Source of the DNA: Lepidodermella squamata
Taxonomy: Eukaryota > Animalia > Gastrotricha
DNA length: 64,000 nt
NCBI GenBank assembly: GCA_047495785.1
Contig: JBLDXI010000011.1
Location: forward strand, 62,001 to 126,000
Direction of reading: 5' to 3'
Shown piece by piece: positions 1-29,267 of this stretch. The first letter of the stretch is position 1. The number at the start of each line of letters is the position of its first letter. The position numbers were made by a program, and so were the translations under genes. The notes below the pieces were generated by a model. That model had not been told where the DNA came from. It saw only the letters and a program-made list of their open reading frames with translations, and ran no database searches.

Positions 1-3000
1 GGTAAATCAGCCATATTCTGGCATCATTCGATAGTGGCAGCATGCGCAAACACGTTTGCAGGCGATTGGCGCACATTTCGGATGACCGATATTTCGCTGC
101 CAGCCAAAACGGCTGAAATCGCAGTTTTGGACCCTTGTACGTAGCGCCACGATGCAGAATCGTGCGCCACCGCGGTAAATCAGCCATATTCTGGCATCAT
201 TCGATAGTGGCAGCATGCGCAAACACGTTTGCAGGCGATTGGCGCACATTTCGGATGACCGATATTTCGCTGCCAGCCAAAACGGCTGAAATCGCAGTTT
301 TGGACCCTTGTACGTAGCGCCACGATGCAGAATCGTGCGCCACCGCGGTAAATCAGCCATATTCTGGCATCATTCGATAGTGGCAGCATGCGCAAACACG
401 TTTGCAGGCGATTGGCGCACATTTCGGATGACCGATATTTCGCTGCCAGCCAAAACGGCTGAAATCGCAGTTTTGGACCCTTGTACGTAGCGCCACGATG
501 CAGAATCGTGCGCCACCGCGGTAAATCAGCCATATTCTGGCATCATTCGATAGTGGCAGCATGCGCAAACACGTTTGCAGGCGATTGGCGCACATTTCGG
601 ATGACCGATATTTCGCTGCCAGCCAAAACGGCTGAAATCGCAGTTTTGGACCCTTGTACGTAGCGCCACGATGCAGAATCGTGCGCCACCGCGGTAAATC
701 AGCCATATTCTGGCATCATTCGATAGTGGCAGCATGCGCAAACACGTTTGCAGGCGATTGGCGCACATTTCGGATGACCGATATTTCGCTGCCAGCCAAA
801 ACGGCTGAAATCGCAGTTTTGGACCCTTGTACGTAGCGCCACGATGCAGAATCGTGCGCCACCGCGGTAAATCAGCCATATTCTGGCATCATTCGATAGT
901 GGCAGCATGCGCAAACACGTTTGCAGGCGATTGGCGCACATTTCGGATGACCGATATTTCGCTGCCAGCCAAAACGGCTGAAATCGCAGTTTTGGACCCT
1001 TGTACGTAGCGCCACGATGCAGAATCGTGCGCCACCGCGGTAAATCAGCCATATTCTGGCATCATTCGATAGTGGCAGCATGCGCAAACACGTTTGCAGG
1101 CGATTGGCGCACATTTCGGATGACCGATATTTCGCTGCCAGCCAAAACGGCTGAAATCGCAGTTTTGGACCCTTGTACGTAGCGCCACGATGCAGAATCG
1201 TGCGCCACCGCGGTAAATCAGCCATATTCTGGCATCATTCGATAGTGGCAGCATGCGCAAACACGTTTGCAGGCGATTGGCGCACATTTCGGATGACCGA
1301 TATTTCGCTGCCAGCCAAAACGGCTGAAATCGCAGTTTTGGACCCTTGTACGTAGCGCCACGATGCAGAATCGTGCGCCACCGCGGTAAATCAGCCATAT
1401 TCTGGCATCATTCGATAGTGGCAGCATGCGCAAACACGTTTGCAGGCGATTGGCGCACATTTCGGATGACCGATATTTCGCTGCCAGCCAAAACGGCTGA
1501 AATCGCAGTTTTGGACCCTTGTACGTAGCGCCACGATGCAGAATCGTGCGCCACCGCGGTAAATCAGCCATATTCTGGCATCATTCGATAGTGGCAGCAT
1601 GCGCAAACACGTTTGCAGGCGATTGGCGCACATTTCGGATGACCGATATTTCGCTGCCAGCCAAAACGGCTGAAATCGCAGTTTTGGACCCTTGTACGTA
1701 GCGCCACGATGCAGAATCGTGCGCCACCGCGGTAAATCAGCCATATTCTGGCATCATTCGATAGTGGCAGCATGCGCAAACACGTTTGCAGGCGATTGGC
1801 GCACATTTCGGATGACCGATATTTCGCTGCCAGCCAAAACGGCTGAAATCGCAGTTTTGGACCCTTGTACGTAGCGCCACGATGCAGAATCGTGCGCCAC
1901 CGCGGTAAATCAGCCATATTCTGGCATCATTCGATAGTGGCAGCATGCGCAAACACGTTTGCAGGCGATTGGCGCACATTTCGGATGACCGATATTTCGC
2001 TGCCAGCCAAAACGGCTGAAATCGCAGTTTTGGACCCTTGTACGTAGCGCCACGATGCAGAATCGTGCGCCACCGCGGTAAATCAGCCATATTCTGGCAT
2101 CATTCGATAGTGGCAGCATGCGCAAACACGTTTGCAGGCGATTGGCGCACATTTCGGATGACCGATATTTCGCTGCCAGCCAAAACGGCTGAAATCGCAG
2201 TTTTGGACCCTTGTACGTAGCGCCACGATGCAGAATCGTGCGCCACCGCGGTAAATCAGCCATATTCTGGCATCATTCGATAGTGGCAGCATGCGCAAAC
2301 ACGTTTGCAGGCGATTGGCGCACATTTCGGATGACCGATATTTCGCTGCCAGCCAAAACGGCTGAAATCGCAGTTTTGGACCCTTGTACGTAGCGCCACG
2401 ATGCAGAATCGTGCGCCACCGCGGTAAATCAGCCATATTCTGGCATCATTCGATAGTGGCAGCATGCGCAAACACGTTTGCAGGCGATTGGCGCACATTT
2501 CGGATGACCGATATTTCGCTGCCAGCCAAAACGGCTGAAATCGCAGTTTTGGACCCTTGTACGTAGCGCCACGATGCAGAATCGTGCGCCACCGCGGTAA
2601 ATCAGCCATATTCTGGCATCATTCGATAGTGGCAGCATGCGCAAACACGTTTGCAGGCGATTGGCGCACATTTCGGATGACCGATATTTCGCTGCCAGCC
2701 AAAACGGCTGAAATCGCAGTTTTGGACCCTTGTACGTAGCGCCACGATGCAGAATCGTGCGCCACCGCGGTAAATCAGCCATATTACACATCTCGTGAGG
2801 GAGTTGCAGCATGCGCAAACACGTTTGCAGGCGATGGCGCACATTTCGGATGACCGATATTTCGCTGCCAGCCCAAACGGCTGAAATCGCAGTTTTGGAC
2901 CCTTGTACGTAGCGCCACGATGCAGAATCGTGCGCCAACCGCGGTAAATCAGCCATATTCTGGCATCTTTCGATAGTGCAGCATGCGCAAACACGTTGCA

Positions 3001-6000
3001 GGCGATTGGCGCACATTTCGGATGACCGATATTTCGCTGCCAGCCAAAACGGCTGAAATCGCAGTTTTGGACCCTTGTACGTAGCGCCACGATGCAGAAA
3101 CGTGCGCACCGCGGTAAATCAGCCATATTCTGGCATCATTCGATAGTGGCAGCATGCGCAAACACGTTTGCAGGCGATTGGCGCACATTTCGGATGACCG
3201 ATATTTCGCTGCCAGCCAAAACGGCTGAATCGCAGTTTGGACCCTTGTACGTAGCGCCACGATGCAGAATCGTGGGCCACCGCGATAATCAGCCCATATT
3301 CTGCAGCATCATTCGATAGTGGCAGCATGCGCAAACACGTTTGCAGGCGATTGGCGCACATTTCGGATGACCGATATTTCGCTGCCAGCCAAAACGGCTG
3401 AAATCGCAGTTTGGACCCTTGTACGTAGCGCCACGATTGCAGAATCGTGCGCCACCGCGGTAATCAGCCATATTCTGGCATCATTCGATAGTGGCAGCAT
3501 GCGCAAACAACGTTTGCAGGCGATTGGCGCACATTTCGGATGACCGATATTTCGCTGCCAGCCAAAACGGCTGAAATCGCAGTTTTGGACCCTTGTACGT
3601 AGCGCCACGATGCAGAATCGTGCGCCACCGCGGTAAATCAGCCATATTCTGGCATCATTCGATAGTGGCAGCATGCGGCAAAACACCGTTTGCAGGCGAT
3701 TGGCGCACATTTCGGATGACCGATATTTCGCTGCCAGCCAAACGGCTGAAATCGCAGTTTTGGACCCTTGTACGTAGCGCCACGATGCAGAATCGTGCGC
3801 CACCCGCGGTAAATCAGCCATATTCTGGCATCATTCGATAGTGGCAGCATGCGCAAACACGTTTTGCAGGCGATTGGCGCACATTTCGGATGACGATATT
3901 TCGCTGCCAGCCAAAACGGCTGAAATCGCAGTTTTGGACCCTTTGTACGTAGCGCCACGATGCAGAATCGTGCGCCACCGCGGTAAATCAGCCATATTCT
4001 GGCATCATTCGATAGTGGCAGCATGCGCAAACACGTTGCAGGCGATTGGCGCACATTTCGGATGACCGATATTTCGCTGCCAGCCAAAACGGCTGAAATC
4101 GCAGTTTTGGACCCTTGTACGTAGCGCCACGATGCAGAATCGTGCGCCACCGCGGTAAATCAGCCATATTCTGGCATCATTCGATAGTGGCAGCATGCGC
4201 AAACACGTTTGCAGGCGATTGGCGCACATTTCGGATGACCGATATTTCGCTGCCAGCCAAAACGGCTGAAATCGCAGTTTTGGACCCTTGTACGTAGCGC
4301 CACGATGCAGAATCGTGCGCCACCGCGGTAAATCAGCCATATTCTGGCATCATTCGATAGTGGCAGCATGCGCAAACACGTTTGCAGGCGATTGGCGCAC
4401 ATTTCGGATGACCGATATTTCGCTGCCAGCCAAAACGGCTGAAATCGCAGTTTTTGGACCCTTGTACGTAGCGCCACGATGCAGAATCGTGCGCCACCGC
4501 GGTAATCAGCCATATTCTGGCATCATTCGATAGTGGCAGCATGCGCAAACACGTTTGCAGGCGATTGCGCACATTTCGGATGACCGATATTTCGCTGCCA
4601 GCCAAAACGGCTGAAATCGCAGTTTTGGACCCTTGTACGTAGCGCCACGATGCAGAATCGTGCGCCACCGCGGTAAATCAGCCATATTCTGGCATCATTC
4701 GATAGTGGCAGCATGCGCAAAACACGTTTGCAGGCGATTGGCGCACATTTCGGATGACCGATATTTCGCTGCCAGCCAAACGGCTGAAATCGCAGTTTTG
4801 GACCCTTGTACGTAGCGCCACGATGCAGAATCGTGCGCCACCCGCGGTAAATCAGCCATATTCTGGCATCATTCGATAGTGGCAGCATGCGCAAACACGT
4901 TTGCAGGCGATTGGCGCACATTTCGGATGACCGATATTTCGCTGCCAGCCAAAACGACTGAAATCGCAGTTTTGGACCCTTGTACGTAGCGCCACGATGC
5001 AGAATCGTGCGCCACCGCGGTAAATCAGCCATATTCTGGCATCATTCGATAGTGCAGCATGCGCAAACACGTTTGCAGGCGATTGGCGCACATTTCGGAT
5101 GACCGATATTTCGCTGCCAGCCAAAACGGCTGAAATCGCAGTTTTGGACCCTTGTACGTAGCGCCACGATGCAGAATCGTGCGCCACCGCGGTAAATCAG
5201 CCATATTCTGGCATCATTCGATAGTGGCAGCATGCGCAAACACGTTTGCAGGCGATTGGCGCACATTTCGGATGACCGATATTTCGCTGCCAGCCAAAAC
5301 GGCTGAAATCGCAGTTTTGGACCCTTGTACGTAGCGCCACGATGCAGAATCGTGCGCCACCGCGGTAAATCAGCCATATTCTGGCATCATTCGATAGTGC
5401 AGCATGCGCAAACACGTTTGCAGGCGATTGGCGCACATTTCGGATGACCGATATTTCGCTGCCAGCCAAAACGGCTGAAATCGCAGTTTTGGACCCTTGT
5501 ACGTAGCGCCACGATGCAGAATCGTGCGCCAACCGCGGTAAATCAGCCATATTCTGGCATCATTCGATAGTGGCAGCATGCGCAAACACGTTTGCAGGCG
5601 ATTGGCGCACATTTCGGATGACCGATATTTCGCTGCCAGCCAAAACGGCTGAAATCGCAGTTTTTGGACCCTTGTACGTAGCGCCACGATGCAGAATCGT
5701 GCGCCACCGCGGTAAATCAGCCATATTCTGGCATCATTCGATAGTGGCAGCATGCGCAAACACGTTTGCAGGCGATTGGCGCACATTTCGGATGACCGAT
5801 ATTTCGCTGCCAGCCAAAACGGCTGAAATCGCAGTTTTGGACCCTTGTACGTAGCGCCACGATGCAGAATTCGTGCGCCACCGCGGTAAATCAGCCATAT
5901 TCTGGCATCATTCGATAGTGGCAGCATGCGCAAACACGTTTGCAGGCGATTGGCGCACATTTCGGATGACCGATATTTCGCTGCCAGCCAAAACGGCTGA

Positions 6001-8417
6001 AATCGCAGTTTTGGACCCTTGTACGTAGCTCCACGATGCAGAATCGTGCGCCACCCGCGGTAAATCAGCCATATTCTGGCATCATTCGATAGTGGCAGCA
6101 TGCGCAAACACGTTTGCAGGCGATTGGCGCACATTTCGGATGACCGATATTCGCTGCCAGCCAAAACGGCTGAAATCGCAGTTTGGACCCTTGTACGTAG
6201 CGCCACGATGCAGAATCGTGCGCCACCGCGGTAAATCAGGCCATATTCTGGCATCATTCGATAGTGGCAGCATGCGCAAACACGTTTGCAGGCGATTGGC
6301 GCACATTTCGGATGACCGATATTTCGCTGCCAGCCAAAACGGCTGAATCGCAGTTTTGGACCCTTGTACGTAGCGCCACGATGCAGAATCGTGCGCCACC
6401 GCGGTAAATCAGCCATATTCTGGCATCATTCGATAGTGGCAGCATGCGCAAACACGTTTGCAGGCGATTGGCGCACATTTCGGATGACCGATATTTCGCT
6501 GCCAGCCAACACGGCTGAAATCGCAGTTTTTGGACCCTTGTACGTAGCGCCACGATGCAGAATCGTGCGCCACCGCGGTAAATCAGCATATTCTGGCATC
6601 ATTCGATAGTGGCAGCATGCGCAAACACGTTTTGCAGGCGATTGGCGCACATTTCGGATGACCGATATTTCGCTGCCAGCCAACACGGCTGAAATCGCAG
6701 TTTTGGACCCTTGTACGTAGCGCCACGATGCAGAATCGTGCGCCCACCGCGGTAAATCAGCCATATTCTGGCATCATTCGATAGTGGCAGCATGCGCAAA
6801 CACGTTTGCAGGCGATTGGCGCACATTTCGGATGACCGATATTTCGCTGCCAGCCAACACGGCTGAAATCGCAGTTTTGGACCCTTGTACGTAGCGCCAC
6901 GATGCAGAATCGTGCGCCACCGCGGTAAATCAGCCATATTCTGGCATCATTCGATAGTGGCAGCATGCGCAAACACGTTTGCAGGCGATTGGCGCACATT
7001 TCGATGACCGATATTTCACTGCCAGCCAAAACGGCTGAAATCGCAGTTTTGGACCCTTGTACGTAGCGCCCACGATGCAGAATCGTGCGCCACCCGCGGT
7101 AAATCAGCCATATTCTGGCATCATTCGATAGTCGGCAGCATGCGCAAACACGTTTGCAGGCGATTGGCGCACATTTCGGATGACCGATATTTCGCTGCCA
7201 GCCAAAACGGCTGAAATCGCAGTTTTGGACCCTTGTACGTAGCGCCACGATGCAGAATCGTGCGCCACCGCGGTAAATCAGCCATATTCTGGCATCATTC
7301 GATAGTGGCAGCATGCGCAAACACGTTTGCAGGCGATTGGCGCACATTTCGGCATGACCGATATTTCGCTGCCAGCCAAAACGGCTGAAATCGCAGTTTT
7401 GGACCCCTTGTACGTAGCGCCACGATGCAGAATCGTGCGCCACCGCGGTAAATCAGCCATATTCTGGCATCATTCGATAGTGGCAGCATGCGCAGAACAC
7501 GTTTGCAGGCGATTGGCGCACATTTCGGATGACCGATATTTCGCTGCCAGCCAAAACGGCTGAAATCGCAGTTTTGGACCCTTGTACGTAGCGCCACGAT
7601 GCAGAATCGTGCGCCACCGCGGTAAATCAGCCATATTCTGGCATCATTCGATAGTGGCAGCATGCGCAAACACGTTTGCAGGCGATTGGCGCACATTTCG
7701 GATGACCGATATTTCGCTGCCAGCCAAAACGGCTGAAATCGCAGTTTTGGACCCTTGTACGTAGCGCCACGATGCAGAATCGTGCGCCACCGCGGTAAAT
7801 CAGCCATATTCTGGCATCATTCGATAGTGGCAGCATGCGCAAACACGTTTGCAGGCGATTGGCGCACATTTCGGATGACCGATATTTCGCTGCCAGCCAA
7901 AACGGCTGAAATCGCAGTTTTGGACCCTTGTACGTAGCGCCACGATGCAGAATCGTGCGCCACCGCGGTAAATCAGCCATATTCTGGCATCATTCGATAG
8001 TGGCAGCATGCGCAAACACGTTTGCAGGCGATTGGCGCACATTTCGGATGACCGATATTTCGCTGCCAGCCAAAACGGCTGAAATCGCAGTTTTGGACCC
8101 TTGTACGTAGCGCCACGATGCAGAATCGTGCGCCACCGCGGTAAATCAGCCATATTCTGGCATCATTCGATAGTGGCAGCATGCGCAAACACGTTTGCAG
8201 GCGGTTGGCGCACATTTCGGATGACCGATATTTCGCTGCCAGCCAAAACGGCTGAAATCGCAGTTTTGGACCCTTGTACGTAGCGCCACGATGCAGAATC
8301 GTGCGCCACCGCGGTAAATCAGCCATATTCTGGCATCATTCGATAGTGGCAGCATGCGCAAACACGTTTGCAGGCGATTGGCGCACATTTCGGATGACCG
8401 ATATTTCGCTGCCAGCC
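1..8417. repeat. 173-bp tandem satellite array, left block (about 48.6 monomers; open at the window start)
   Basis: The monomer GGTAAATCAGCCATATTCTGG...CGTGCGCCACCGC recurs every 173 bp, and the ORF track repeats with the same period. I counted 92/173 GC. Copies at 1-2785 are identical; 2786 to about 7500 carries many 1-bp indels. Confidence 0.99.
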
Positions 8418-8454
8418 TGTCAGGACCACGCGACCCTGTAGTATCGGCGGTCGA

Positions 8455-8542
8455 GAAGTTTCCAGAAACTTCCGCGTTCTCGAACCTGCCAGAACCCAGC
8501 AAGTTCTCGAACCTTCCAGAAACTTCCGATTCTAGAACATTC
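8455..8542 (+). promoter_or_regulatory. Cluster of four heat-shock elements (inverted nGAAn arrays) in LTR U3
   Basis: GAAgtTTCcaGAAacTTC (8455-8472), TTCtcGAAccTGCcaGAA (8477-8494), TTCtcGAAccTTCcaGAAacTTC (8504-8526), TTCtaGAAcaTTC (8530-8542). Confidence 0.88.
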
Positions 8543-8550
8543 CATTGTAA

Positions 8551-8558
8551 TATATAAA
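8551..8558 (+). promoter_or_regulatory. LTR TATA box
   Basis: TATATAAA, 8 bp downstream of the last HSE and about 30 bp upstream of the predicted transcription start (about 8583). Confidence 0.8.
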
Positions 8559-8664
8559 CCCTTGTTTCGCTTATGTTATTTTAATTGTAATATTAACTGT
8601 TTCTTTGCTAATAAACGGCAATACTTAGCTTACAGCTTCTGTGTTTTGCTTCCGCTCTTACACG

Positions 8665-8675
8665 ATATTACAATT
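8665..8675 (+). other. Self-priming type primer binding site (non-tRNA)
   Basis: ATATTACAATT, 2 nt after the 5' LTR, is the exact reverse complement of AATTGTAATAT at 8583-8593 in the LTR. No TGG tRNA-type PBS is present. Confidence 0.8.
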
Positions 8676-8728: not shown

Positions 8729-11700
8729 ATGGAAGCTACCGAACTCCATGCCCAGTTGGCCGATCTTCAAGGCCAGAACTATGCGATTAACCAGCGACTC
8801 AACGCCTTCACCGACCAAATCGCACAACTCTGCACCGCTGTCAATGCCTTGCGAGCTGTTGCACCCTCGGTTCAACCCGTTGCTTCGGATCCCGTTGCCC
8901 AAGTCCCGGTTACTACGACTCAGCCGAATGCTTTACGGGCGAAGATACCTGGTCGGTATGCCGGCGATCGGTCTAAGTTCCGAGCCTTTGTCACGCAATG
9001 CCAGATCTACCTACGACTGAATGCAGCCTACTACCCCGATGATTCTGCAAAGGTCGCGTTCATCTGCACTCTGCTGGACGACTCTGCCCGAGATTGGATG
9101 ACGCCCTTTGCCGAGACGAACCACGCCATTATGAGCGATTTTGCGGCGTTCCTGGCAAGTTTCAAGGCGGCCTTCGACGATCCTAATCGCACACGAACAG
9201 CCGAGTTAGCGCTTCAACGGCTCAAACAAGGCAACCGCTCAGTTGCAGTTTACGCTGCCGAGTTTCAGCGCCTGGCTGTCGACACCACCTGGAACGACTC
9301 CGCGCTCGCTCACCAGTTCCGGTTCGGTCTATCCGACGAAATCAAAGATGAGCTGGCCCGTGTTGATTACCCGTCCAACCTGCAAGATCTGATCAACCTG
9401 TCGAACAAAATTGACGCCAGGCTCACAGAGCGTAGGTTGGAGAGAAAGCATCAAGCGATTTTTCCAAGGTCCACGGTGGTTCCTCCCACGATCACCGCTC
9501 CTGCCTCATTGCCGCAAGCAGCAGCACAGCCGGAGCCAGAGCCAATGCAGGTCGACGTTGTTCGCAAACCGTTGACGCAAGCGGAACGAGAATACCGACG
9601 CAAGAACGGCCTCTGCATGTACTGCGGTCAACCTGGCCATGTTATTCGTACCTGCCCGACACGACCTACCACAGCTCGTGTTAGGAAAATTAACAATATC
9701 CAACATGATGTACCTATTGCTGATGATGAAATAAATAATGAAGAATCGTACTCGCGCTCCTCTCTTTTTCTGTTGAGGTCTGTTGTCAACGTCCCAAAGG
9801 ATGACCTTGCTGTCATGGCAATAGCTATGGTCGACTGCGGCGCGGACGGCAACTTCATGGACATCCAGTTCGCCAAGGAGCACGACATCCCGCTGATCGA
9901 AAAGAAGAAACCAATCCCTGTTGGTGGAATAGATGGCCGATCGCTCAAATCTGGTCCGATAACTCATCAAACTGCTCCCTTACAGTTCGAAATCTATGGC
10001 CACATCGAGACTATTGTATTCGAGCTCATCGATAGTCCTCACTACCCAGTCATCCTCGGTATTCCCTGGTTGGAGCTTCACGACCCAACGATCCGATGGT
10101 CGGGAAGAACAATCATGTTCAACGCTGCGCATTGCAAGAAGCATTGCAACGCTGAATTCCAGCATCATTTCGTTGCGGCTGTGAGTCAAGCTACAGCTGC
10201 GCCTGTAGACCCGCTCCAAGGTCTACCTTCAAAATACCATGAGTTTGCTGATGTCTTCAGCGAAAAAGAAGCTGACAAACTACCCCCACATCGGCCATAC
10301 GATTGTCCGATCGATCTCGAACCTGGAACAATGCCACCATTCGGCCCGATCTACAGTTTATCAGAAGTTGAGCTGGAAGCATTGAAGAAATACATTTCCG
10401 AGAACCTGGAGAAAGGCTTCATCCGTTCATCAAAGTCCTCTGCGGGATCTCCCATCCTTTTCGTTAAGAAAAAAGACGGCACCCTTCGGCTATGTGTCGA
10501 CTATCGTGGCCTGAACAAAATCACAAAACGAAACCGGTATCCATTGCCTTTGATTCCGGAACTCCTGGACCGTTTGCGACATGCTAAGATCTTTACTAAA
10601 CTGGACCTCCGCGGCGCTTACAATTTACTCCGGATTAAGGAGGGCGATGAGTGGAAAACCGCGTTCCGTACCAGGTATGGCCTTTTCGAGTACCTGGTTA
10701 TGCCTTTTGGGTTGACCAATGCCCCGGCGGCGTTCCAGTACTTCATGAACGACATATTCCGCGACATGCTGGACATTTGCGTGGTTATCTACCTCGATGA
10801 TATCCTCATTTTCAGCGAAGATCCCAGCAAACACGAGGAACATGTCAGAGAAGTGCTTCGACGGCTGAGAGAAAATCGGCTATTCTCCAAACTGTCGAAG
10901 TGCGAGTTCGATGTCAAGAAGGTCGAATTTCTCGGATTTCACATTTCCACGGAAGGCATTGCCATGGACGAGAAGAAAGTGGCCTGTATCCGCGACTGGA
11001 AACGTCCAACATCCGTGAAAGACATCCAATGCTTCATGGGCTTTGCAAACTTCTATCGACGCTTCGTCGCGAATTTTGCCAAAATTGCGCACCCAATCAA
11101 TCGTCTCCTGAAGAAAAATGCACCTTTTCACTGGGATGACAGCGCCGAACAAGCTTTCAAAACCCTGAAAGAGAAGTTCACTTCAGCTCCCGTTCTGATT
11201 CATCCAGACCCCGATTTGCCGTTCATTGTCGAGACCGACTGTTCAAATTTCGCACTTGGATGCATTCTCTCTCAAGTCCACTCCGATGGCCGTTTGCACC
11301 CTTGTGCTTACTACTCGCGAAGTCTGTCCGACGCCGAGCGGAACTACGATATCCACGACAAGGAACTTTTGGCGGTCAAAGTGGCTTTCGAAGAATGGCG
11401 ACATTACCTCGAAGGTGCTCGCCACAAAATAACGGTTTACTGCGACCACAAAAACCTGGAATACTTCATGAGCCAAAGGAAGATTCTCAGTCAAAGGCAA
11501 GCTCGATGGGCGAACTTTTTCTCGCGATTCGATTTCGTTCTTACGTACCGCCCTGGTAGCAAAGGGGGAAAACCGGACGCCTTGTCCAGAAGACCCGAGT
11601 ACCGCGGAACTGACAAAAATGACGATCCCGAAGCCTCGAGCGTGCTAACCCCTGCCCATTTCCAAGTGATGGCACTCAAATCGTTTTCGTGGTCTTGCCA

Positions 11701-13315
11701 ATTTTCGGAAGACATCAAGTCAGCTTTGGCCTCCGATTCCTTTGCAAAGTCCGTTCTTGAATCCTTAAACGGCGAACACTGCGACCCGAAGTATGAACAC
11801 TTTTCCGAGCAAAACGGCTTGCTGTTGTTCAAGAACTTGATCTACGTCCCTGAAAGTCTACGGCTGAAAGTGTTACAGCTCCGTCATGACGCCAAGGTTG
11901 CAGGGCATTTCGGTTTCCGGAAAACTTTGGAGCTTGTCTCTCGCGATTATTGGTGGCCGAAGCAACGCCAGTTTGTCTACGAGTTCGTCAAGACTTGCGA
12001 TACCTGTAAGCGAGCCAAGGCGCCAAGACACCTGCCGTATGGCAATCTCGAACCGTTACCAACCCCGGATCGACCATGGTCCTCCATTTCGATGGATTTC
12101 ATCACCGAGCTTCCTCAATCAAACGGAAATACAGTGATTCTGAATGTAGTCGATCGGCTAACGAAAATGGCCCATTTCATTTCGCTTCCCAAACTACCAT
12201 CAGCAGAAGAAACAGCTTCAGTGTTTCTCAAGGACATTTTCCGATTACACGGCGTACCAGATTCGACCGTGACAGACCGCGGCTCGCAATTCGCCTCAAA
12301 ATTCTGGAAACGATTTTTTGAGCTTCTAGGAACCGATGTCAAACTCTCAACTGCAAATCACCCGGAAACAGACGGCCAGACGGAGCGTGTCAACCAGGTG
12401 CTGGAGCAATACCTTCGTTGTTTCACGAGCTACCAACAAGACGATTGGGCCGATCTGCTCCCCATCGCTGAATTCTGCTACAATAATTCGCTGCACGCTT
12501 CGACGAACTGCACTCCTTTCCTTGCCAACTATGGTTTCCAGCCCAAATTCGACCCGTTGACACCAAATTCCAGTGAAGTTCCTCGCGCCGAAGCTCGCAT
12601 CAAGGACCTTTCGGAACTGAAAAACGCCCTCATGACCGAACTGGAAGCCGCAAAAGAAACGTACAAGAAATACGCCGACCTCAAGCGGCAACCAGGTCCA
12701 ACTTTTTCCGAAGGCGACCTTGTTTGGCTATCAGCCAAGCATGTTTCGACGAACCGACCAAGCAAAAAACTTGATTTCAAGCGTCTTGGGCCGTTCAAAG
12801 TCGTCGAGAAGATCAGTGAGTTGGTTTACCGACTTCAACTGCCTCCAAGTCTGAAAATCCATCCGGTGTTTCACATCTCCATGCTAGAGCCATACGTCGA
12901 AAACACGATTCCCGGTCGAAAACAACCGCCGCCACCACCAGTCGAATCCGAAGAAGGCGACGAATTCGAAGTTGAAGCCATACTCGACTCGAAGGTGGAA
13001 CGTGGCACCTTGAAGTACCTGGTTGATTGGAAGGGTTATGACCCAGAAGAACGAAGTTGGGAGCCGGTTTCAAACCTGAACTGTCCAGACCTGTTGGCCG
13101 AGTTCCACGCCAAGTACCCTGACAAACCGAAAGGCACGAATGCGACGTCTGGAAGCCGTCGGCTACGACGGGGGATGTCAGGACCACGCGACCCTGTAGT
13201 ATCGGCGGTCGAGAAGTTTCCAGAAACTTCCGCGTTCTCGAACCTGCCAGAACCCAGCAAGTTCTCGAACCTTCCAGAAACTTCCGATTCTAGAACATTC
13301 CATTGTAATATATAA
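8729..13315 (+). CDS. Gag-Pol polyprotein, 1528 aa (capsid, CCHC zinc knuckle, aspartic protease, RT, RNase H, integrase, chromodomain)
   Basis: CMYCGQPGHVIRTC knuckle; VDCGADGNF protease; RLCVDYRGLN and YLDD RT; ETDCS..ERNY..DKELL..DHKNL RNase H; HDAKVAGH..CDTC, MDF, TDRG and ETDGQTER integrase; GPF motif; FEVEAILD..YLVDWKGY..SWEP chromodomain. Confidence 0.98.
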   Translation: MEATELHAQLADLQGQNYAINQRLNAFTDQIAQLCTAVNALRAVAPSVQPVASDPVAQVPVTTTQPNALRAKIPGRYAGDRSKFRAFVTQCQIYLRLNAAYYPDDSAKVAFICTLLDDSARDWMTPFAETNHAIMSDFAAFLASFKAAFDDPNRTRTAELALQRLKQGNRSVAVYAAEFQRLAVDTTWNDSALAHQFRFGLSDEIKDELARVDYPSNLQDLINLSNKIDARLTERRLERKHQAIFPRSTVVPPTITAPASLPQAAAQPEPEPMQVDVVRKPLTQAEREYRRKNGLCMYCGQPGHVIRTCPTRPTTARVRKINNIQHDVPIADDEINNEESYSRSSLFLLRSVVNVPKDDLAVMAIAMVDCGADGNFMDIQFAKEHDIPLIEKKKPIPVGGIDGRSLKSGPITHQTAPLQFEIYGHIETIVFELIDSPHYPVILGIPWLELHDPTIRWSGRTIMFNAAHCKKHCNAEFQHHFVAAVSQATAAPVDPLQGLPSKYHEFADVFSEKEADKLPPHRPYDCPIDLEPGTMPPFGPIYSLSEVELEALKKYISENLEKGFIRSSKSSAGSPILFVKKKDGTLRLCVDYRGLNKITKRNRYPLPLIPELLDRLRHAKIFTKLDLRGAYNLLRIKEGDEWKTAFRTRYGLFEYLVMPFGLTNAPAAFQYFMNDIFRDMLDICVVIYLDDILIFSEDPSKHEEHVREVLRRLRENRLFSKLSKCEFDVKKVEFLGFHISTEGIAMDEKKVACIRDWKRPTSVKDIQCFMGFANFYRRFVANFAKIAHPINRLLKKNAPFHWDDSAEQAFKTLKEKFTSAPVLIHPDPDLPFIVETDCSNFALGCILSQVHSDGRLHPCAYYSRSLSDAERNYDIHDKELLAVKVAFEEWRHYLEGARHKITVYCDHKNLEYFMSQRKILSQRQARWANFFSRFDFVLTYRPGSKGGKPDALSRRPEYRGTDKNDDPEASSVLTPAHFQVMALKSFSWSCQFSEDIKSALASDSFAKSVLESLNGEHCDPKYEHFSEQNGLLLFKNLIYVPESLRLKVLQLRHDAKVAGHFGFRKTLELVSRDYWWPKQRQFVYEFVKTCDTCKRAKAPRHLPYGNLEPLPTPDRPWSSISMDFITELPQSNGNTVILNVVDRLTKMAHFISLPKLPSAEETASVFLKDIFRLHGVPDSTVTDRGSQFASKFWKRFFELLGTDVKLSTANHPETDGQTERVNQVLEQYLRCFTSYQQDDWADLLPIAEFCYNNSLHASTNCTPFLANYGFQPKFDPLTPNSSEVPRAEARIKDLSELKNALMTELEAAKETYKKYADLKRQPGPTFSEGDLVWLSAKHVSTNRPSKKLDFKRLGPFKVVEKISELVYRLQLPPSLKIHPVFHISMLEPYVENTIPGRKQPPPPPVESEEGDEFEVEAILDSKVERGTLKYLVDWKGYDPEERSWEPVSNLNCPDLLAEFHAKYPDKPKGTNATSGSRRLRRGMSGPRDPVVSAVEKFPETSAFSNLPEPSKFSNLPETSDSRTFHCNI
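13165..13175 (+). other. Polypurine tract (short, imperfect)
   Basis: ACGACGGGGGA immediately 5' of the 3' LTR. Confidence 0.65.
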
Positions 13316-13420
13316 ACCCTTGTTTCGCTTATGTTATTTTAATTGTAATATTAACTGTTTCTTTGCTAATAAACGGCAATACTTAGCTTACAGCTTCTGT
13401 GTTTTGCTTCCGCTCTTACA
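13176..13420 (+). repeat. 3' LTR (245 bp), with HSE cluster 13213-13300, TATA 13309-13316 and AATAAA 13368-13373
   Basis: Direct repeat of the 5' LTR at offset 4758, followed by TSD CAGCC and in-register resumption of the satellite. Confidence 0.97.
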
Positions 13421-16400
13421 CAGCCAAAACGGCTGAAATCGCAGTTTTGGACCCTTGTACGTAGCGCCACGATGCAGAATCGTGCGCCACCGCGGTAAAT
13501 CAGCCATATTCTGGCATCATTCGATAGTGGCAGCATGCGCAAACACGTTTGCAGGCGATTGGCGCACATTTCGGATGACCGATATTTCGCTGCCAGCCAA
13601 AACGGCTGAAATCGCAGTTTTGGACCCTTGTACGTAGCGCCACGATGCAGAATCGTGCGCCACCGCGGTAAATCAGCCATATTCTGGCATCATTCGATAG
13701 TGGCAGCATGCGCAAACACGTTTGCAGGCGATTGGCGCACATTTCGGATGACCGATATTTCGCTGCCAGCCAAAACGGCTGAAATCGCAGTTTTGGACCC
13801 TTGTACGTAGCGCCTCGATGCAGAATCGTGCGCCACCGCGGTAAATCAGCCATATTCTGGCATCATTCGATAGTGGCAGCATGCGCAAACACGTTTGCAG
13901 GCGATTGGCGCACATTTCGGATGACCGATATTTCGCTGCCAGCCAAAACGGCTGAAATCGCAGTTTTGGACCCTTGTACGTAGCGCCTCGATGCAGAATC
14001 GTGCGCCACCGCGGTAAATCAGCCATATTCTGGCATCATTCGATAGTGGCAGCATGCGCAAACACGTTTGCAGGCGATTGGCGCACATTTCGGATGACCG
14101 ATATTTCGCTGCCAGCCAAAACGGCTGAAATCGCAGTTTTGGACCCTTGTACGTAGCGCCACGATGCAGAATCGTGCGCCACCGCGGTAAATCAGCCATA
14201 TTCTGGCATCATTCGATAGTGGCAGCATGCGCAAACACGTTTGCAGGCGATTGGCGCACATTTCGGATGACCGATATTTCGCTGCCAGCCAAAACGGCTG
14301 AAATCGCAGTTTTGGACCCTTGTACGTAGCGCCTCGATGCAGAATCGTGCGCCACCGCGGTAAATCAGCCATATTCTGGCATCATTCGATAGTGGCAGCA
14401 TGCGCAAACACGTTTGCAGGCGATTGGCGCACATTTCGGATGACCGATATTTCGCTGCCAGCCAAAACGGCTGAAATCGCAGTTTTGGACCCTTGTACGT
14501 AGCGCCACGATGCAGAATCGTGCGCCACCGCGGTAAATCAGCCATATTCTGGCATCATTCGATAGTGGCAGCATGCGCAAACACGTTTGCAGGCGATTGG
14601 CGCACATTTCGGATGACCGATATTTCGCTGCCAGCCAAAACGGCTGAAATCGCAGTTTTGGACCCTTGTACGTAGCGCCACGATGCAGAATCGTGCGCCA
14701 CCGCGGTAAATCAGCCATATTCTGGCATCATTCGATAGTGGCAGCATGCGCAAACACGTTTGCAGGCGATTGGCGCACATTTCGGATGACCGATATTTCG
14801 CTGCCAGCCAAAACGGCTGAAATCGCAGTTTTGGACCCTTGTACGTAGCGCCACGATGCAGAATCGTGCGCCACCGCGATAAATCAGCCATATTCTGGCA
14901 TCATTCGATAGTGGCAGCATGCGCAAACACGTTTGCAGGCGATTGGCGCACATTTCGGATGACCGATATTTCGCTGCCAGCCAAAACGGCTGAAATCGCA
15001 GTTTTGGACCCTTGTACGTAGCGCCACGATGCAGAATCGTGCGCCACCGCGGTAAATCAGCCATATTCTGGCATCATTCGATAGTGGCAGCATGCGCAAA
15101 CACGTTTGCAGGCGATTGGCGCACATTTCGGATGACCGATATTTCGCTGCCAGCCAAAACGGCTGAAATCGCAGTTTTGGACCCTTGTACGTAGCGCCAC
15201 GATGCAGAATCGTGCGCCACCGCGATAAATCAGCCATATTCTGGCATCATTCGATAGTGGCAGCATGCGCAAACACGTTTGCAGGCGATTGGCGCACATT
15301 TCGGATGACCGATATTTCGCTGCCAGCCAAAACGGCTGAAATCGCAGTTTTGGACCCTTGTACGTAGCGCCACGATGCAGAATCGTGCGCCACCGCGGTA
15401 AATCAGCCATATTCTGGCATCATTCGATAGTGGCAGCATGCGCAAACACGTTTGCAGGCGATTGGCGCACATTTCGGATGACCGATATTTCGCTGCCAGC
15501 CAAAACGGCTGAAATCGCAGTTTTGGACCCTTGTACGTAGCGCCACGATGCAGAATCGTGCGCCACCGCGGTAAATCAGCCATATTCTGGCATCATTCGA
15601 TAGTGGCAGCATGCGCAAACACGTTTGCAGGCGATTGGCGCACATTTCGGATGACCGATATTTCGCTGCCAGCCAAAACGGCTGAAATCGCAGTTTTGGA
15701 CCCTTGTACGTAGCGCCACGATGCAGAATCGTGCGCCACCGCGGTAAATCAGCCATATTCTGGCATCATTCGATAGTGGCAGCATGCGCAAACACGTTTG
15801 CAGGCGATTGGCGCACATTTCGGATGACCGATATTTCGCTGCCAGCCAAAACGGCTGAAATCGCAGTTTTGGACCCTTGTACGTAGCGCCACGATGCAGA
15901 ATCGTGCGCCACCGCGGTAAATCAGCCATATTCTGGCATCATTCGATAGTGGCAGCATGCGCAAACACGTTTGCAGGCGATTGGCGCACATTTCGGATGA
16001 CCGATATTTCGCTGCCAGCCAAAACGGCTGAAATCGCAGTTTTGGACCCTTGTACGTAGCGCCACGATGCAGAATCGTGCGCCACCGCGGTAAATCAGCC
16101 ATATTCTGGCATCATTCGATAGTGGCAGCATGCGCAAACACGTTTGCAGGCGATTGGCGCACATTTCGGATGACCGATATTTCGCTGCCAGCCAACACGG
16201 CTGAAATCGCAGTTTTGGACCCTTGTACGTAGCGCCACGATGCAGAATCGTGCGCCACCGCGGTAAATCAGCCATATTCTGGCATCATTCGATAGTGGCA
16301 GCATGCGCAAACACGTTTGCAGGCGATTGGCGCACATTTCGGATGACCGATATTTCGCTGCCAGCCAAAACGGCTGAAATCGCAGTTTTGGACCCTTGTA

Positions 16401-19400
16401 CGTAGCGCCACGATGCAGAATCGTGCGCCACCGCGGTAAATCAGCCATATTCTGGCATCATTCGATAGTGGCAGCATGCGCAAACACGTTTGCAGGCGAT
16501 TGGCGCACATTTCGGATGACCGATATTTCGCTGCCAGCCAAAACGGCTGAAATCGCAGTTTTGGACCCTTGTACGTAGCGCCACGATGCAGAATCGTGCG
16601 CCACCGCGGTAAATCAGCCATATTCTGGCATCATTCGATAGTGGCAGCATGCGCAAACACGTTTGCAGGCGATTGGCGCACATTTCGGATGACCGATATT
16701 TCGCTGCCAGCCAACACGGCTGAAATCGCAGTTTTGGACCCTTGTACGTAGCGCCACGATGCAGAATCGTGCGCCACCGCGGTAAATCAGCCATATTCTG
16801 GCATCATTCGATAGTGGCAGCATGCGCAAACACGTTTGCAGGCGATTGGCGCACATTTCGGATGACCGATATTTCGCTGCCAGCCAAAACGGCTGAAATC
16901 GCAGTTTTGGACCCTTGTACGTAGCGCCACGATGCAGAATCGTGCGCCACCGCGATAAATCAGCCATATTCTGGCATCATTCGATAGTGGCAGCATGCGC
17001 AAACACGTTTGCAGGCGATTGGCGCACATTTCGGATGACCGATATTTCGCTGCCAGCCAAAACGGCTGAAATCGCAGTTTTGGACCCTTGTACGTAGCGC
17101 CACGATGCAGAATCGTGCGCCACCGCGATAAATCAGCCATATTCTGGCATCATTCGATAGTGGCAGCATGCGCAAACACGTTTGCAGGCGATTGGCGCAC
17201 ATTTCGGATGACCGATATTTCGCTGCCAGCCAAAACGGCTGAAATCGCAGTTTTGGACCCTTGTACGTAGCGCCACGATGCAGAATCGTGCGCCACCGCG
17301 GTAAATCAGCCATATTCTGGCATCATTCGATAGTGGCAGCATGCGCAAACACGTTTGCAGGCGATTGGCGCACATTTCGGATGACCGATATTTCGCTGCC
17401 AGCCAAAACGGCTGAAATCGCAGTTTTGGACCCTTGTACGTAGCGCCACGATGCAGAATCGTGCGCCACCGCGGTAAATCAGCCATATTCTGGCATCATT
17501 CGATAGTGGCAGCATGCGCAAACACGTTTGCAGGCGATTGGCGCACATTTCGGATGACCGATATTTCGCTGCCAGCCAAAACGGCTGAAATCGCAGTTTT
17601 GGACCCTTGTACGTAGCGCCACGATGCAGAATCGTGCGCCACCGCGGTAAATCAGCCATATTCTGGCATCATTCGATAGTGGCAGCATGCGCAAACACGT
17701 TTGCAGGCGATTGGCGCACATTTCGGATGACCGATATTTCGCTGCCAGCCAACACGGCTGAAATCGCAGTTTTGGACCCTTGTACGTAGCGCCACGATGC
17801 AGAATCGTGCGCCACCGCGGTAAATCAGCCATATTCTGGCATCATTCGATAGTGGCAGCATGCGCAAACACGTTTGCAGGCGATTGGCGCACATTTCGGA
17901 TGACCGATATTTCGCTGCCAGCCAAAACGGCTGAAATCGCAGTTTTGGACCCTTGTACGTAGCGCCACGATGCAGAATCGTGCGCCACCGCGGTAAATCA
18001 GCCATATTCTGGCATCATTCGATAGTGGCAGCATGCGCAAACACGTTTGCAGGCGATTGGCGCACATTTCGGATGACCGATATTTCGCTGCCAGCCAAAA
18101 CGGCTGAAATCGCAGTTTTGGACCCTTGTACGTAGCGCCACGATGCAGAATCGTGCGCCACCGCGGTAAATCAGCCATATTCTGGCATCATTCGATAGTG
18201 GCAGCATGCGCAAACACGTTTGCAGGCGATTGGCGCACATTTCGGATGACCGATATTTCGCTGCCAGCCAAAACGGCTGAAATCGCAGTTTTGGACCCTT
18301 GTACGTAGCGCCACGATGCAGAATCGTGCGCCACCGCGGTAAATCAGCCATATTCTGGCATCATTCGATAGTGGCAGCATGCGCAAACACGTTTGCAGGC
18401 GATTGGCGCACATTTCGGATGACCGATATTTCGCTGCCAGCCAAAACGGCTGAAATCGCAGTTTTGGACCCTTGTACGTAGCGCCACGATGCAGAATCGT
18501 GCGCCACCGCGATAAATCAGCCATATTCTGGCATCATTCGATAGTGGCAGCATGCGCAAACACGTTTGCAGGCGATTGGCGCACATTTCGGATGACCGAT
18601 ATTTCGCTGCCAGCCAAAACGGCTGAAATCGCAGTTTTGGACCCTTGTACGTAGCGCCACGATGCAGAATCGTGCGCCACCGCGATAAATCAGCCATATT
18701 CTGGCATCATTCGATAGTGGCAGCATGCGCAAACACGTTTGCAGGCGATTGGCGCACATTTCGGATGACCGATATTTCGCTGCCAGCCAAAACGGCTGAA
18801 ATCGCAGTTTTGGACCCTTGTACGTAGCGCCACGATGCAGAATCGTGCGCCACCGCGGTAAATCAGCCATATTCTGGCATCATTCGATAGTGGCAGCATG
18901 CGCAAACACGTTTGCAGGCGATTGGCGCACATTTCGGATGACCGATATTTCGCTGCCAGCCAAAACGGCTGAAATCGCAGTTTTGGACCCTTGTACGTAG
19001 CGCCACGATGCAGAATCGTGCGCCACCGCGGTAAATCAGCCATATTCTGGCATCATTCGATAGTGGCAGCATGCGCAAACACGTTTGCAGGCGATTGGCG
19101 CACATTTCGGATGACCGATATTTCGCTGCCAGCCAAAACGGCTGAAATCGCAGTTTTGGACCCTTGTACGTAGCGCCACGATGCAGAATCGTGCGCCACC
19201 GCGGTAAATCAGCCATATTCTGGCATCATTCGATAGTGGCAGCATGCGCAAACACGTTTGCAGGCGATTGGCGCACATTTCGGATGACCGATATTTCGCT
19301 GCCAGCCAAAACGGCTGAAATCGCAGTTTTGGACCCTTGTACGTAGCGCCACGATGCAGAATCGTGCGCCACCGCGGTAAATCAGCCATATTCTGGCATC

Positions 19401-22400
19401 ATTCGATAGTGGCAGCATGCGCAAACACGTTTGCAGGCGATTGGCGCACATTTCGGATGACCGATATTTCGCTGCCAGCCAAAACGGCTGAAATCGCAGT
19501 TTTGGACCCTTGTACGTAGCGCCACGATGCAGAATCGTGCGCCACCGCGATAAATCAGCCATATTCTGGCATCATTCGATAGTGGCAGCATGCGCAAACA
19601 CGTTTGCAGGCGATTGGCGCACATTTCGGATGACCGATATTTCGCTGCCAGCCAAAACGGCTGAAATCGCAGTTTTGGACCCTTGTACGTAGCGCCACGA
19701 TGCAGAATCGTGCGCCACCGCGATAAATCAGCCATATTCTGGCATCATTCGATAGTGGCAGCATGCGCAAACACGTTTGCAGGCGATTGGCGCACATTTC
19801 GGATGACCGATATTTCGCTGCCAGCCAAAACGGCTGAAATCGCAGTTTTGGACCCTTGTACGTAGCGCCACGATGCAGAATCGTGCGCCACCGCGGTAAA
19901 TCAGCCATATTCTGGCATCATTCGATAGTGGCAGCATGCGCAAACACGTTTGCAGGCGATTGGCGCACATTTCGGATGACCGATATTTCGCTGCCAGCCA
20001 AAACGGCTGAAATCGCAGTTTTGGACCCTTGTACGTAGCGCCACGATGCAGAATCGTGCGCCACCGCGGTAAATCAGCCATATTCTGGCATCATTCGATA
20101 GTGGCAGCATGCGCAAACACGTTTGCAGGCGATTGGCGCACATTTCGGATGACCGATATTTCGCTGCCAGCCAAAACGGCTGAAATCGCAGTTTTGGACC
20201 CTTGTACGTAGCGCCACGATGCAGAATCGTGCGCCACCGCGGTAAATCAGCCATATTCTGGCATCATTCGATAGTGGCAGCATGCGCAAACACGTTTGCA
20301 GGCGATTGGCGCACATTTCGGATGACCGATATTTCGCTGCCAGCCAAAACGGCTGAAATCGCAGTTTTGGACCCTTGTACGTAGCGCCACGATGCAGAAT
20401 CGTGCGCCACCGCGGTAAATCAGCCATATTCTGGCATCATTCGATAGTGGCAGCATGCGCAAACACGTTTGCAGGCGATTGGCGCACATTTCGGATGACC
20501 GATATTTCGCTGCCAGCCAAAACGGCTGAAATCGCAGTTTTGGACCCTTGTACGTAGCGCCACGATGCAGAATCGTGCGCCACCGCGATAAATCAGCCAT
20601 ATTCTGGCATCATTCGATAGTGGCAGCATGCGCAAACACGTTTGCAGGCGATTGGCGCACATTTCGGATGACCGATATTTCGCTGCCAGCCAAAACGGCT
20701 GAAATCGCAGTTTTGGACCCTTGTACGTAGCGCCACGATGCAGAATCGTGCGCCACCGCGGTAAATCAGCCATATTCTGGCATCATTCGATAGTGGCAGC
20801 ATGCGCAAACACGTTTGCAGGCGATTGGCGCACATTTCGGATGACCGATATTTCGCTGCCAGCCAAAACGGCTGAAATCGCAGTTTTGGACCCTTGTACG
20901 TAGCGCCACGATGCAGAATCGTGCGCCACCGCGATAAATCAGCCATATTCTGGCATCATTCGATAGTGGCAGCATGCGCAAACACGTTTGCAGGCGATTG
21001 GCGCACATTTCGGATGACCGATATTTCGCTGCCAGCCAAAACGGCTGAAATCGCAGTTTTGGACCCTTGTACGTAGCGCCACGATGCAGAATCGTGCGCC
21101 ACCGCGATAAATCAGCCATATTCTGGCATCATTCGATAGTGGCAGCATGCGCAAACACGTTTGCAGGCGATTGGCGCACATTTCGGATGACCGATATTTC
21201 GCTGCCAGCCAAAACGGCTGAAATCGCAGTTTTGGACCCTTGTACGTAGCGCCACGATGCAGAATCGTGCGCCACCGCGATAAATCAGCCATATTCTGGC
21301 ATCATTCGATAGTGGCAGCATGCGCAAACACGTTTGCAGGCGATTGGCGCACATTTCGGATGACCGATATTTCGCTGCCAGCCAAAACGGCTGAAATCGC
21401 AGTTTTGGACCCTTGTACGTAGCGCCACGATGCAGAATCGTGCGCCACCGCGGTAAATCAGCCATATTCTGGCATCATTCGATAGTGGCAGCATGCGCAA
21501 ACACGTTTGCAGGCGATTGGCGCACATTTCGGATGACGGATATTTCGCTGCCAGCCAAAACGGCTGAAATCGCAGTTTTGGACCCTTGTACGTAGCGCCA
21601 CGATGCAGAATCGTGCGCCACCGCGGTAAATCAGCCATATTCTGGCATCATTCGATAGTGGCAGCATGCGCAAACACGTTTGCAGGCGATTGGCGCACAT
21701 TTCGGATGACCGATATTTCGCTGCCAGCCAAAACGGCTGAAATCGCAGTTTTGGACCCTTGTACGTAGCGCCACGATGCAGAATCGTGCGCCACCGCGGT
21801 AAATCAGCCATATTCTGGCATCATTCGATAGTGGCAGCATGCGCAAACACGTTTGCAGGCGATTGGCGCACATTTCGGATGACCGATATTTCGCTGCCAG
21901 CCAAAACGGCTGAAATCGCAGTTTTGGACCCTTGTACGTAGCGCCACGATGCAGAATCGTGCGCCACCGCGATAAATCAGCCATATTCTGGCATCATTCG
22001 ATAGTGGCAGCATGCGCAAACACGTTTGCAGGCGATTGGCGCACATTTCGGATGACCGATATTTCGCTGCCAGCCAAAACGGCTGAAATCGCAGTTTTGG
22101 ACCCTTGTACGTAGCGCCACGATGCAGAATCGTGCGCCACCGCGATAAATCAGCCATATTCTGGCATCATTCGATAGTGGCAGCATGCGCAAACACGTTT
22201 GCAGGCGATTGGCGCACATTTCGGATGACCGATATTTCGCTGCCAGCCAAAACGGCTGAAATCGCAGTTTTGGACCCTTGTACGTAGCGCCACGATGCAG
22301 AATCGTGCGCCACCGCGATAAATCAGCCATATTCTGGCATCATTCGATAGTGGCAGCATGCGCAAACACGTTTGCAGGCGATTGGCGCACATTTCGGATG

Positions 22401-28400: not shown

Positions 28401-29267
28401 GATAGTGGCAGCATGCGCAAACACGTTTGCAGGCGATTGGCGCACATTTCGGATGACCGATATTTCGCTGCCAGCCAAAACGGCTGAAATCGCAGTTTTG
28501 GACCCTTGTACGTAGCGCCACGATGCAGAATCGTGCGCCACCGCGGTAAATCAGCCATATTCTGGCATCATTCGATAGTGGCAGCATGCGCAAACACGTT
28601 TGCAGGCGATTGGCGCACATTTCGGATGACCGATATTTCGCTGCCAGCCAAAACGGCTGAAATCGCAGTTTTGGACCCTTGTACGTAGCGCCACGCTGCA
28701 GAATCGTGCGCCACCGCGGTAAATCAGCCATATTCTGGCATCATTCGATAGTGGCAGCATGCGCAAACACGTTTGCAGGCGATTGGCGCACATTTCGGAT
28801 GACCGATATTTCGCTGCCAGCCAAAACGGCTGAAATCGCAGTTTTGGACCCTTGTACGTAGCGCCACGATGCAGAATCGTGCGCCACCGCGGTAAATCAG
28901 CCATATTCTGGCATCATTCGATAGTGGCAGCATGCGCAAACACGTTTGCAGGCGATTGGCGCACATTTCGGATGACCGATATTTCGCTGCCAGCCAACAC
29001 GGCTGAAATCGCAGTTTTGGACCCTTGTACGTAGCGCCACGATGCAGAATCGTGCGCCACCGCGGTAAATCAGCCATATTCTGGCATCATTCGATAGTGG
29101 CAGCATGCGCAAACACGTTTGCAGGCAATTGGCGCACATTTCGGATGACCGATATTTCGCTGCCAGCCAAAACGGCTGAAATCGCAGTTTTGGACCCTTG
29201 TACGTAGCGCCACGATGCAGAATCGTGCGCCACCGCGGTAAATCAGCCATATTCTGGCATCATTCGA
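13421..29267. repeat. 173-bp tandem satellite array, right block (about 91.6 monomers)
   Basis: Exact 173-bp period with no indels and only a handful of recurring SNPs. Ends mid-monomer at ...GGCATCATTCGA (29267). Confidence 0.99.

Follow-up and report, generated by a model that had tools for sequence, protein, structure and literature searches.

The window, by which we mean the whole stretch of 64,000 nucleotides analysed here, contains a structurally complete Ty3/gypsy chromovirus of 5,003 bp (8418-13420) embedded in a 173-bp satellite (Table 1). The satellite has a G+C content of ~53%, occupies at least 24 kb and extends past the window's left end. The phase of its monomers is unbroken across the insertion, since the start-to-start spacing of 5181 equals the element, the target duplication and one monomer (5003 + 5 + 173). 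Between the satellite and the genes that follow it (29268-36000), G+C falls and the GC skew is strongly negative; a 279-aa ORF in this transition zone (30612-31451) has no Pfam match. Further to the right, a PHO4-type phosphate transporter gene lies on the minus strand (36620-38580) with at least three exons and short canonical GTGAGT...TAG introns, and this gene most clearly marks the window as nuclear DNA of a eukaryote whose genes are compact. Tandemly duplicated host genes occupy 42100-56100, also on the minus strand, where the segments at 46.4-48.1 kb and 49.8-51.5 kb are similar at 70-83%. The ORFs of these genes match ANF_receptor, 7tm_3 (class-C 7TM), protein kinase and NHL, which suggests that they may encode large receptor-kinase fusions. 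These neighbouring host genes were searched ORF by ORF in exon-sized pieces. Word-indexed searches returned no homologue at E <= 1e-3 for the PHO4-like exon or the ANF-receptor-like ORF, and an exhaustive search of 1.84 billion representative proteins returned nothing above ~34% identity (most matches 22-31%) for the kinase ORF, the names of the top clusters being taxonomically scattered. No Rfam families or tRNAs were found in the window.

Table 1. Features of the chromovirus, its promoter region and the surrounding satellite (HSE, heat-shock element; positions are those of the window)
Feature	Coordinates	Strand	Details
173-bp satellite, left	1..8417		TRF: period 173, 48.6 copies, 98% match
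Target-site duplication CAGCC, left	8413..8417	+	same 5 nt at 13421-13425
5' LTR	8418..8662	+	245 bp, TG...CA termini, 100% identical to 3' LTR (repeat finding, blastn)
U3	8418..8582	+	inferred from predicted start 8583
HSE array 1	8450..8472		5 units: first with one mismatch, 4 perfect from 8455
27-bp tandem module	8462..8538	+	TRF: 2.9 copies, 72% match
HSE array 2	8477..8494		4 units, one mismatch (TGC)
HSE array 3	8499..8526		6 units: first with one mismatch, 5 perfect from 8504
HSE array 4	8530..8542		3 perfect units
TATA box TATATAAA	8551..8558	+	-32 to -25 from predicted start
Predicted transcript 5' end and self-primer	8583..8593	+	11 nt, perfect complement of primer-binding site
R	8583 to ~8630-8640		estimate from usual distance to polyadenylation signal
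AATAAA polyadenylation signal	8610..8615	+	in R, followed by GT-rich stretch
U5	from R end (~8630-8640) to 8662		
Primer-binding site, self-priming (Tf1) type	8665..8675	+	2 nt past LTR
gag-pol ORF	8729..13315	+	single, 1,528 aa, without stops or frameshifts
Gag capsid-like region	8945..9409	+	Retrotrans_gag, Ty3_capsid, DUF4939 (Pfam)
Aspartic-protease-like region	9818..10126	+	Pfam scores below threshold
Reverse transcriptase	10463..10945	+	RVT_1
RNase H	11132..11530	+	RT_RNaseH, RT_RNaseH_2
Integrase	11846..12898	+	H2C2 zinc domain, rve core, Tf2-1-like SH3
Chromodomain	12965..13111	+	PF00385, residues 1413-1461, E 2.6e-14 / 8.2e-16
Short polypurine tract	13167..13175	+	abuts 3' LTR
3' LTR	13176..13420	+	same HSE arrays and TATA box (13309-13316)
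Target-site duplication CAGCC, right	13421..13425	+	
173-bp satellite, right	13421..29267		TRF: 91.6 copies, 99% match

The element combines TG...CA LTRs and a target-site duplication with the gypsy domain order, a C-terminal chromodomain and best matches to chromoviruses. The order, as assigned by Pfam, is gag, protease, reverse transcriptase (RT), RNase H, integrase and chromodomain, and all of these domains score above the Pfam cut-offs except the protease, which falls below threshold. The original prediction that the element is a gypsy-type chromovirus is thus borne out by the Chromo match at the C-terminus (E 2.6e-14). The LTR repeat continues to a 246th matching base, which is the first base of the target duplication. 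As the two LTRs are identical, the insertion is very recent. The exact polyprotein has no match in the protein collection. Among the matches listed, the best are 45-60% identical and come from environmental 5-kb contigs and from fungal, amphibian and fish chromoviruses; most of them carry PF00385, and those with names include Absidia, Cunninghamella, Batrachochytrium, Microbotryum, amphibians and fish. Chromodomain elements are known to target repeat chromatin, and the insertion of an element with a chromodomain integrase into a satellite fits this targeting. The satellite around this copy is probably heterochromatic, and the copy may therefore be silenced whatever the capacity of its promoter.

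The 5' end of the transcript can be predicted because the element appears to prime its own reverse transcription in the manner of Tf1. Self-priming from the mRNA 5' end was demonstrated in Tf1, and it has been inferred in Tj1 and in relatives that range from fungi to vertebrates (PMC4600332). In the window element, 8583-8593 is complementary to 8665-8675 at 11 of 11 nucleotides, and we estimate the chance that an 11-mer at a fixed place has such a partner within 245 nt at ~1e-4. When the RNA of 8583-8680 is folded, the 5' 12 nt pair with the primer-binding site in both the minimum-energy and the centroid structures (z = -3.1). Transcription is accordingly predicted to start at 8583; counted from the first base of the TATA box, this is 32 nt downstream. 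Two of the related loci that are described below show a similar arrangement. In L056, a TATA-like box lies at 5268 and an 11-nt self-primer at 5300-5310, again 32 nt downstream, pairs with 5481-5491 just beyond the LTR; in L001, a near-perfect self-primer follows 34 nt downstream of TATAAAA at 5237. A second complement of the primer-binding site, of 10 nt, is present in the window element at 8544-8553; it shares positions with the TATA box and precedes the copy at 8583-8593 by 39 nt.

Upstream of this start, GAA and TTC triplets alternate in a 5-nt phase over the 88 bp from 8455 to 8542, as seen both by direct reading and with a script. Perfect runs begin at 8455 (four units), 8504 (five units) and 8530 (three units), and a run of four units with one mismatch (TGC for TTC) begins at 8477. 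The LTR therefore holds three perfect arrays of at least three alternating nGAAn units and one mismatched array. The last TTC ends at 8542, leaving a gap of 8 bp before the TATA box at 8551-8558. When flanking units with one mismatch are allowed, the arrays grow to five, four, six and three units, of which 15 of 18 are perfect, and a regular expression for canonical HSEs (from PMC12801592) finds six overlapping matches in the LTR. The 3' LTR holds an identical array displaced by 4758 (13213-13300, or 13208-13300 with the mismatched unit) and followed by its own TATA box at 13309-13316. The four arrays, their 88-bp span and the 8-bp gap had all been read from the letters in the original prediction, and each of them is confirmed. 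Counted from the predicted start, the HSE arrays span -133 to -41 and the TATA box follows at -32 to -25, so that the HSEs are upstream of both the TATA box and the start as placed by the self-primer. This layout of arrays and TATA box is that of a heat-shock (hsp70-like) gene promoter. The placement of the array in U3 and the pairing of HSEs with a TATA box, both of which had been proposed, hold within the 245-bp LTR, and the self-primer 32 nt downstream of that box supports the start independently.

The original prediction had also proposed a comparison with shuffled LTR sequence, which we carried out as a scan for triplet arrays after shuffling the 246-nt repeat 20,000 times with its dinucleotides preserved. 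One or more arrays of at least three perfect units appeared in 95 of the 20,000 shuffles, two arrays appeared in a single shuffle and three in none. When the 96-nt core was shuffled alone, two arrays never appeared. In the remaining ~63.5 kb of the window, with both LTR copies excluded, there are two lone arrays of three units, at 48273 (within a kinase ORF) and at 57392, a number that we estimate to be about the chance level for 64 kb. The GAA/TTC arrays are thus exact, non-random and far beyond chance. Part of this statistical excess arises because a recent 27-bp tandem triplication, considered below, multiplies one site whether or not that site was selected.

The triplets could be read differently if the relevant sites were TTCC tetramers bound by ETS-type factors, TTCC being the complement of the GGAA core that these factors bind, or if some other factor recognised GAA/TTC half-sites. 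There are indeed five TTCC and no GGAA in 8450-8545, giving the tetramers a single orientation. This reading nonetheless leaves unexplained both the 15 perfect triplets in strict 5-nt alternation and the GAA units, which lack the fourth base. The absence of TTC-N3-GAA from the LTR further disfavours a half-site reader, and STAT-type spacing was rejected on the same ground. To our knowledge, ETS factors are restricted to animals. We regard this explanation as very improbable.

The polyprotein ORF extends into the 3' LTR for 140 nt, and its stop codon falls within the TATA box there. The HSE array is therefore also read as protein, forming the final ~46 residues of the polyprotein. It might then be supposed that the pattern reflects constraint on a C-terminal tail encoded by the 3' LTR array. 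We find this extremely improbable, given that the 10-nt period of the DNA is not a multiple of three and cannot come from a peptide repeat, that the tail lies beyond the last recognised domain (the chromodomain ends at residue 1461) and that, by our estimate, 46 stop-free codons occur in about one in nine random sequences. Furthermore, L056 has no tail encoded in U3, its polyprotein gene as called ending ~6 nt into the LTR, and in L001 the stop is at or just before the LTR start. Judged by the comparison with L056, the U3-encoded tail looks incidental.

The repeat structure within the array shows how it was evidently built: a 27-bp module, consisting of a five-unit HSE and 2 further nt, was triplicated in tandem. 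A length of 27 is no multiple of 10, and every duplication therefore interrupts the phase, which has left four separate arrays and no single long run. The module copies have diverged at about a quarter of their positions (28%), and 15 of the 18 triplets are still perfect. A plain 10-bp microsatellite was rejected as a description of the region, since the spacers vary and the triplets are constant. The amplification of enhancer modules within U3 is a familiar route by which LTR promoters evolve.

For comparison with relatives, we used 55 loci from a metagenome scan, in which no relative exceeded 66% best-segment identity, and ten contigs (L056-L065) obtained by exact protein look-up; only the outer bounds of tblastn comparisons were kept. 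Further copies of the family were found neither in the window, beyond the two identical LTRs of this element, nor in IMG/VR when queried with a 30-nt stretch. The first 57 loci were scanned for HSE-like runs, defined as at least three perfect units or four units with no more than one mismatch. Three such sites occur in 11.8 kb downstream of pol, compared with one in 127 kb of coding interior. The downstream sites, together with that of L052, all belong to one clade (L001, L002, L016 and L052) whose LTRs align, and a four-unit HSE lies ~20 nt before the TATA box in all four members. Pairwise identity within this clade is 85% across all eight triplet positions and 92% in the four central ones, whereas the spacers stand at 58% and the remainder of U3 at 62%. 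The difference is seen even though the polyproteins of L001 and L002 are only 74% identical and their LTRs ~57%. Such conservation of triplets is what apparent purifying selection for an HSF site would produce, as judged from four sequences only. We also noted a (CT)n run in the U5 part of the L001-group LTRs (L001 1-211 and 5275-5499; L052 1180-1300). The L001 contig starts 4 nt inside the predicted start of R, and the polyproteins of L001 and L002 occupy more than one open frame.

Among the full-length relatives fetched, the ten that stand closest to the window element (L056-L065, 52-62% identical over shared alignment columns) contain no HSE-like run outside coding sequence, where several of these contigs hold only part of the LTR or little flank and L061 has ~150 nt of non-coding sequence in total. 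A neighbour-joining tree of 16 taxa and 993 shared columns, without support values and computed from unmodified longest open frames, places the window element with L057 and then with L056, L058 and L061; L001 and L002 fall in a separate clade beside L004. The complete 325-bp LTR of L004 has no HSE. The most economical reading of this distribution would be two independent gains of HSEs, one in the window element and one in the L001 clade. The original prediction had named conservation of pentamer spacing in related elements as bearing on its validity; such conservation is present in the clade of L001, L002, L016 and L052 and is not seen in the ten closest relatives fetched.

These results bear on the possibility that the array is a neutral by-product, in which an HSE-like 27-bp segment of U3, present by chance or by ancestry, was triplicated by replication or template-switch slippage. 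The 27-bp period found by TRF (2.9 copies, 72% match, 8462-8538), the spacer dinucleotides that are partly common to the module copies and the lack of HSEs in the closest relatives fetched are all consistent with this scenario, as is the single copy by which the family is represented. On the other hand, a single module already includes a five-unit HSE, where even three units anywhere in the LTR were seen in only 95 of 20,000 shuffles, and the 27-bp repeat begins only at 8462, whereas array 1, with its five units, starts further upstream at 8450. A neutral origin would also leave aside that 15 of 18 triplets are perfect despite 28% divergence between copies, that the array ends 8 bp from the TATA box and that, in an independent clade, an HSE is retained at the corresponding position with its triplets conserved over its spacers. 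We therefore consider a neutral origin quite unlikely.

The closest functional parallels come from systems in which LTR promoters respond to heat. In Macrostomum lignano, four Ty3 families with one to four canonical HSEs rise more than 250-fold on heat, and mutation of the HSE abolishes the response; ONSEN behaves likewise in plants (PMC12801592). The Macrostomum Ty3/Mdg4 elements (Mlig-id115|Mag, Mlig-id55|CsRN1 and Mlig-id38|Gmr1; PMC12801592) belong to the same superfamily as the window element and, like it, carry their motifs (one to four copies of nGAAnnTTCnnGAAn) in the LTR upstream of both the start and the TATA box. Their HSEs were gained independently in separate clades, and they serve as the model for the mechanism that we propose here. 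Unlike the window element, they fall in Mag, in CsRN1 and in Gmr1/Osvaldo, clades which are not chromoviruses and have neither a chromodomain nor self-priming, and their heat induction and HSE dependence are experimental results, those of the window element predictions. The six overlapping regular-expression matches of the window array may be set against the one to four HSEs of the Macrostomum families, with the proviso that the counting may differ. ONSEN (ATCOPIA78) of the Brassicaceae is a Ty1/copia element of a plant host and is tRNA-primed, in all of which it differs from the window element, and no sequence relationship between the two is expected. Descent from ONSEN or other Ty1/copia elements was ruled out, as the integrase of the window element follows RT and RNase H and that of copia precedes RT.

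By descent, the window element is a self-priming chromovirus of the Tf1/sushi kind. We know of no description of HSE arrays as a feature of Tf1, Tf2, Tj1 or sushi LTRs. Tf1 and Tf2 of Schizosaccharomyces pombe, Tj1 of S. japonicus and the Tf1/sushi group share with it the chromodomain, the Ty3/gypsy organisation and a single gag-pol ORF, and Pfam names the SH3 domain found in its integrase after Tf2-1. In these elements the primer-binding site matches, as a complement, the 5' end of the element's own transcript (PMC4600332), as is predicted for the window element. By function, the window element would belong with ONSEN and the Macrostomum families, being a member of neither lineage.

Other transposable elements that have been linked to heat have less extensive motifs or different machinery. 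TCN12 and TCN3 of Cryptococcus move mainly at 37 degrees C and carry putative HSEs in their LTRs, to which the authors propose that Hsf1 binds (PMC9942834, PMC12810828). These are single imperfect step-type HSEs or two putative HSEs, compared with three to four contiguous canonical arrays here, and HSF binding is putative for TCN12 and TCN3 and for the window element alike. Helitron1_CE of Caenorhabditis and DIRS-1 of Dictyostelium carry HSEs or give heat-shock-induced transcripts (PMC6927752; PMC3950715, references 19 and 20); the former is a rolling-circle DNA transposon and the latter a tyrosine-recombinase retroelement, and their machinery is unrelated to that of the window element.

Taken with the layout of the LTR, these parallels make it probable, in our judgement, that the chromovirus LTR is an HSF-responsive RNA polymerase II promoter, with three perfect HSEs and one near-perfect HSE (18 nGAAn units, 93 bp) at -133 to -41. 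Under heat or proteotoxic stress, the host heat-shock factor would trimerise and occupy the array, and its presence there would drive transcription of the full-length RNA from near 8583. This RNA would be the mRNA for gag-pol and also the template on which self-primed reverse transcription proceeds. In this scheme, we infer HSF binding, heat induction and effects on copy number, and we assume the presence and specificity of the host HSF. The idea that host HSF1 drives activation and mobilisation under stress is drawn from the analogy with ONSEN and Macrostomum (PMC12801592); mobilisation would be one step past transcription and has no support in this analysis. Furthermore, an HSE near the start site is not sufficient for induction, because two HSE-bearing copia families of Macrostomum are unresponsive (PMC12801592). 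We count against the HSF-responsive promoter the lack of HSEs in the closest relatives fetched, the tandem triplication and the probably heterochromatic satellite. None of the rival explanations accounts as well for the strict 5-nt alternation beside the TATA box. The interpretation first offered for this locus is partly supported: it stands in all its structural statements, and the support that it receives from relatives is mixed.

The array might also bind an HSF-type factor and yet act as a constitutive, developmental or oxidative-stress enhancer with no heat switch. There are fungal HSF-type factors that are bound without heat, and Skn7-type relatives that respond to oxidative stress. Such an enhancer draws on the same sequence evidence as the heat-responsive promoter, and sequence alone cannot distinguish which HSF-type member binds, or when. 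MAGGY of Magnaporthe, a fungal chromovirus, would be a possible precedent. Heat shock, copper and oxidative stress are all reported to activate it (Ikeda et al. 2001, cited in PMC3978060), and the citing article mentions no HSE for it. Against an enhancer of this type, canonical contiguous HSEs gave heat induction in both LTR cases that have been studied experimentally (PMC12801592). The position of the array points the same way. Three to four contiguous multi-unit HSEs beside a TATA box form the layout of strongly heat-induced genes. We thus hold an enhancer without a heat switch to be unlikely, and favor the hypothesis of a heat-responsive promoter.

HSEs in LTR promoters have been validated in two settings only, ONSEN of crucifers and three Ty3 clades of one flatworm, and the authors of the flatworm study predicted that further examples would turn up throughout the tree of life (PMC12801592). 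In fungi, according to a 2026 paper, activation of this kind 'remains undescribed' (PMC12810828). The window element is a very clean candidate in another clade, that of the self-priming chromoviruses, and what sets it apart is the density of the array, its visible growth by module triplication and the existence of a second HSE-bearing clade in environmental sequences. These features lend weight to the idea that LTR elements capture the heat-shock response repeatedly, as a convergent strategy. The window element is of a kind already known from ONSEN and the Macrostomum Ty3 families and opens no new category; it does provide a defined promoter whose expression can be examined.

A broader proposition joins four parts, namely repeated gain of HSEs in self-priming chromoviruses, chromodomain-guided insertion into satellites, an otherwise silent promoter opened by HSF and a satellite that becomes heat-inducible. 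We think it rather unlikely that all four hold together. HSF1-driven transcription of satellites is known in human cells. If the proposition is true, an element residing in silent repeat chromatin would rely on HSF to open its promoter under stress, and its 3' LTR would turn the 173-bp satellite downstream into a transcription unit inducible by heat, so that a transposon would have created a counterpart to the human case.
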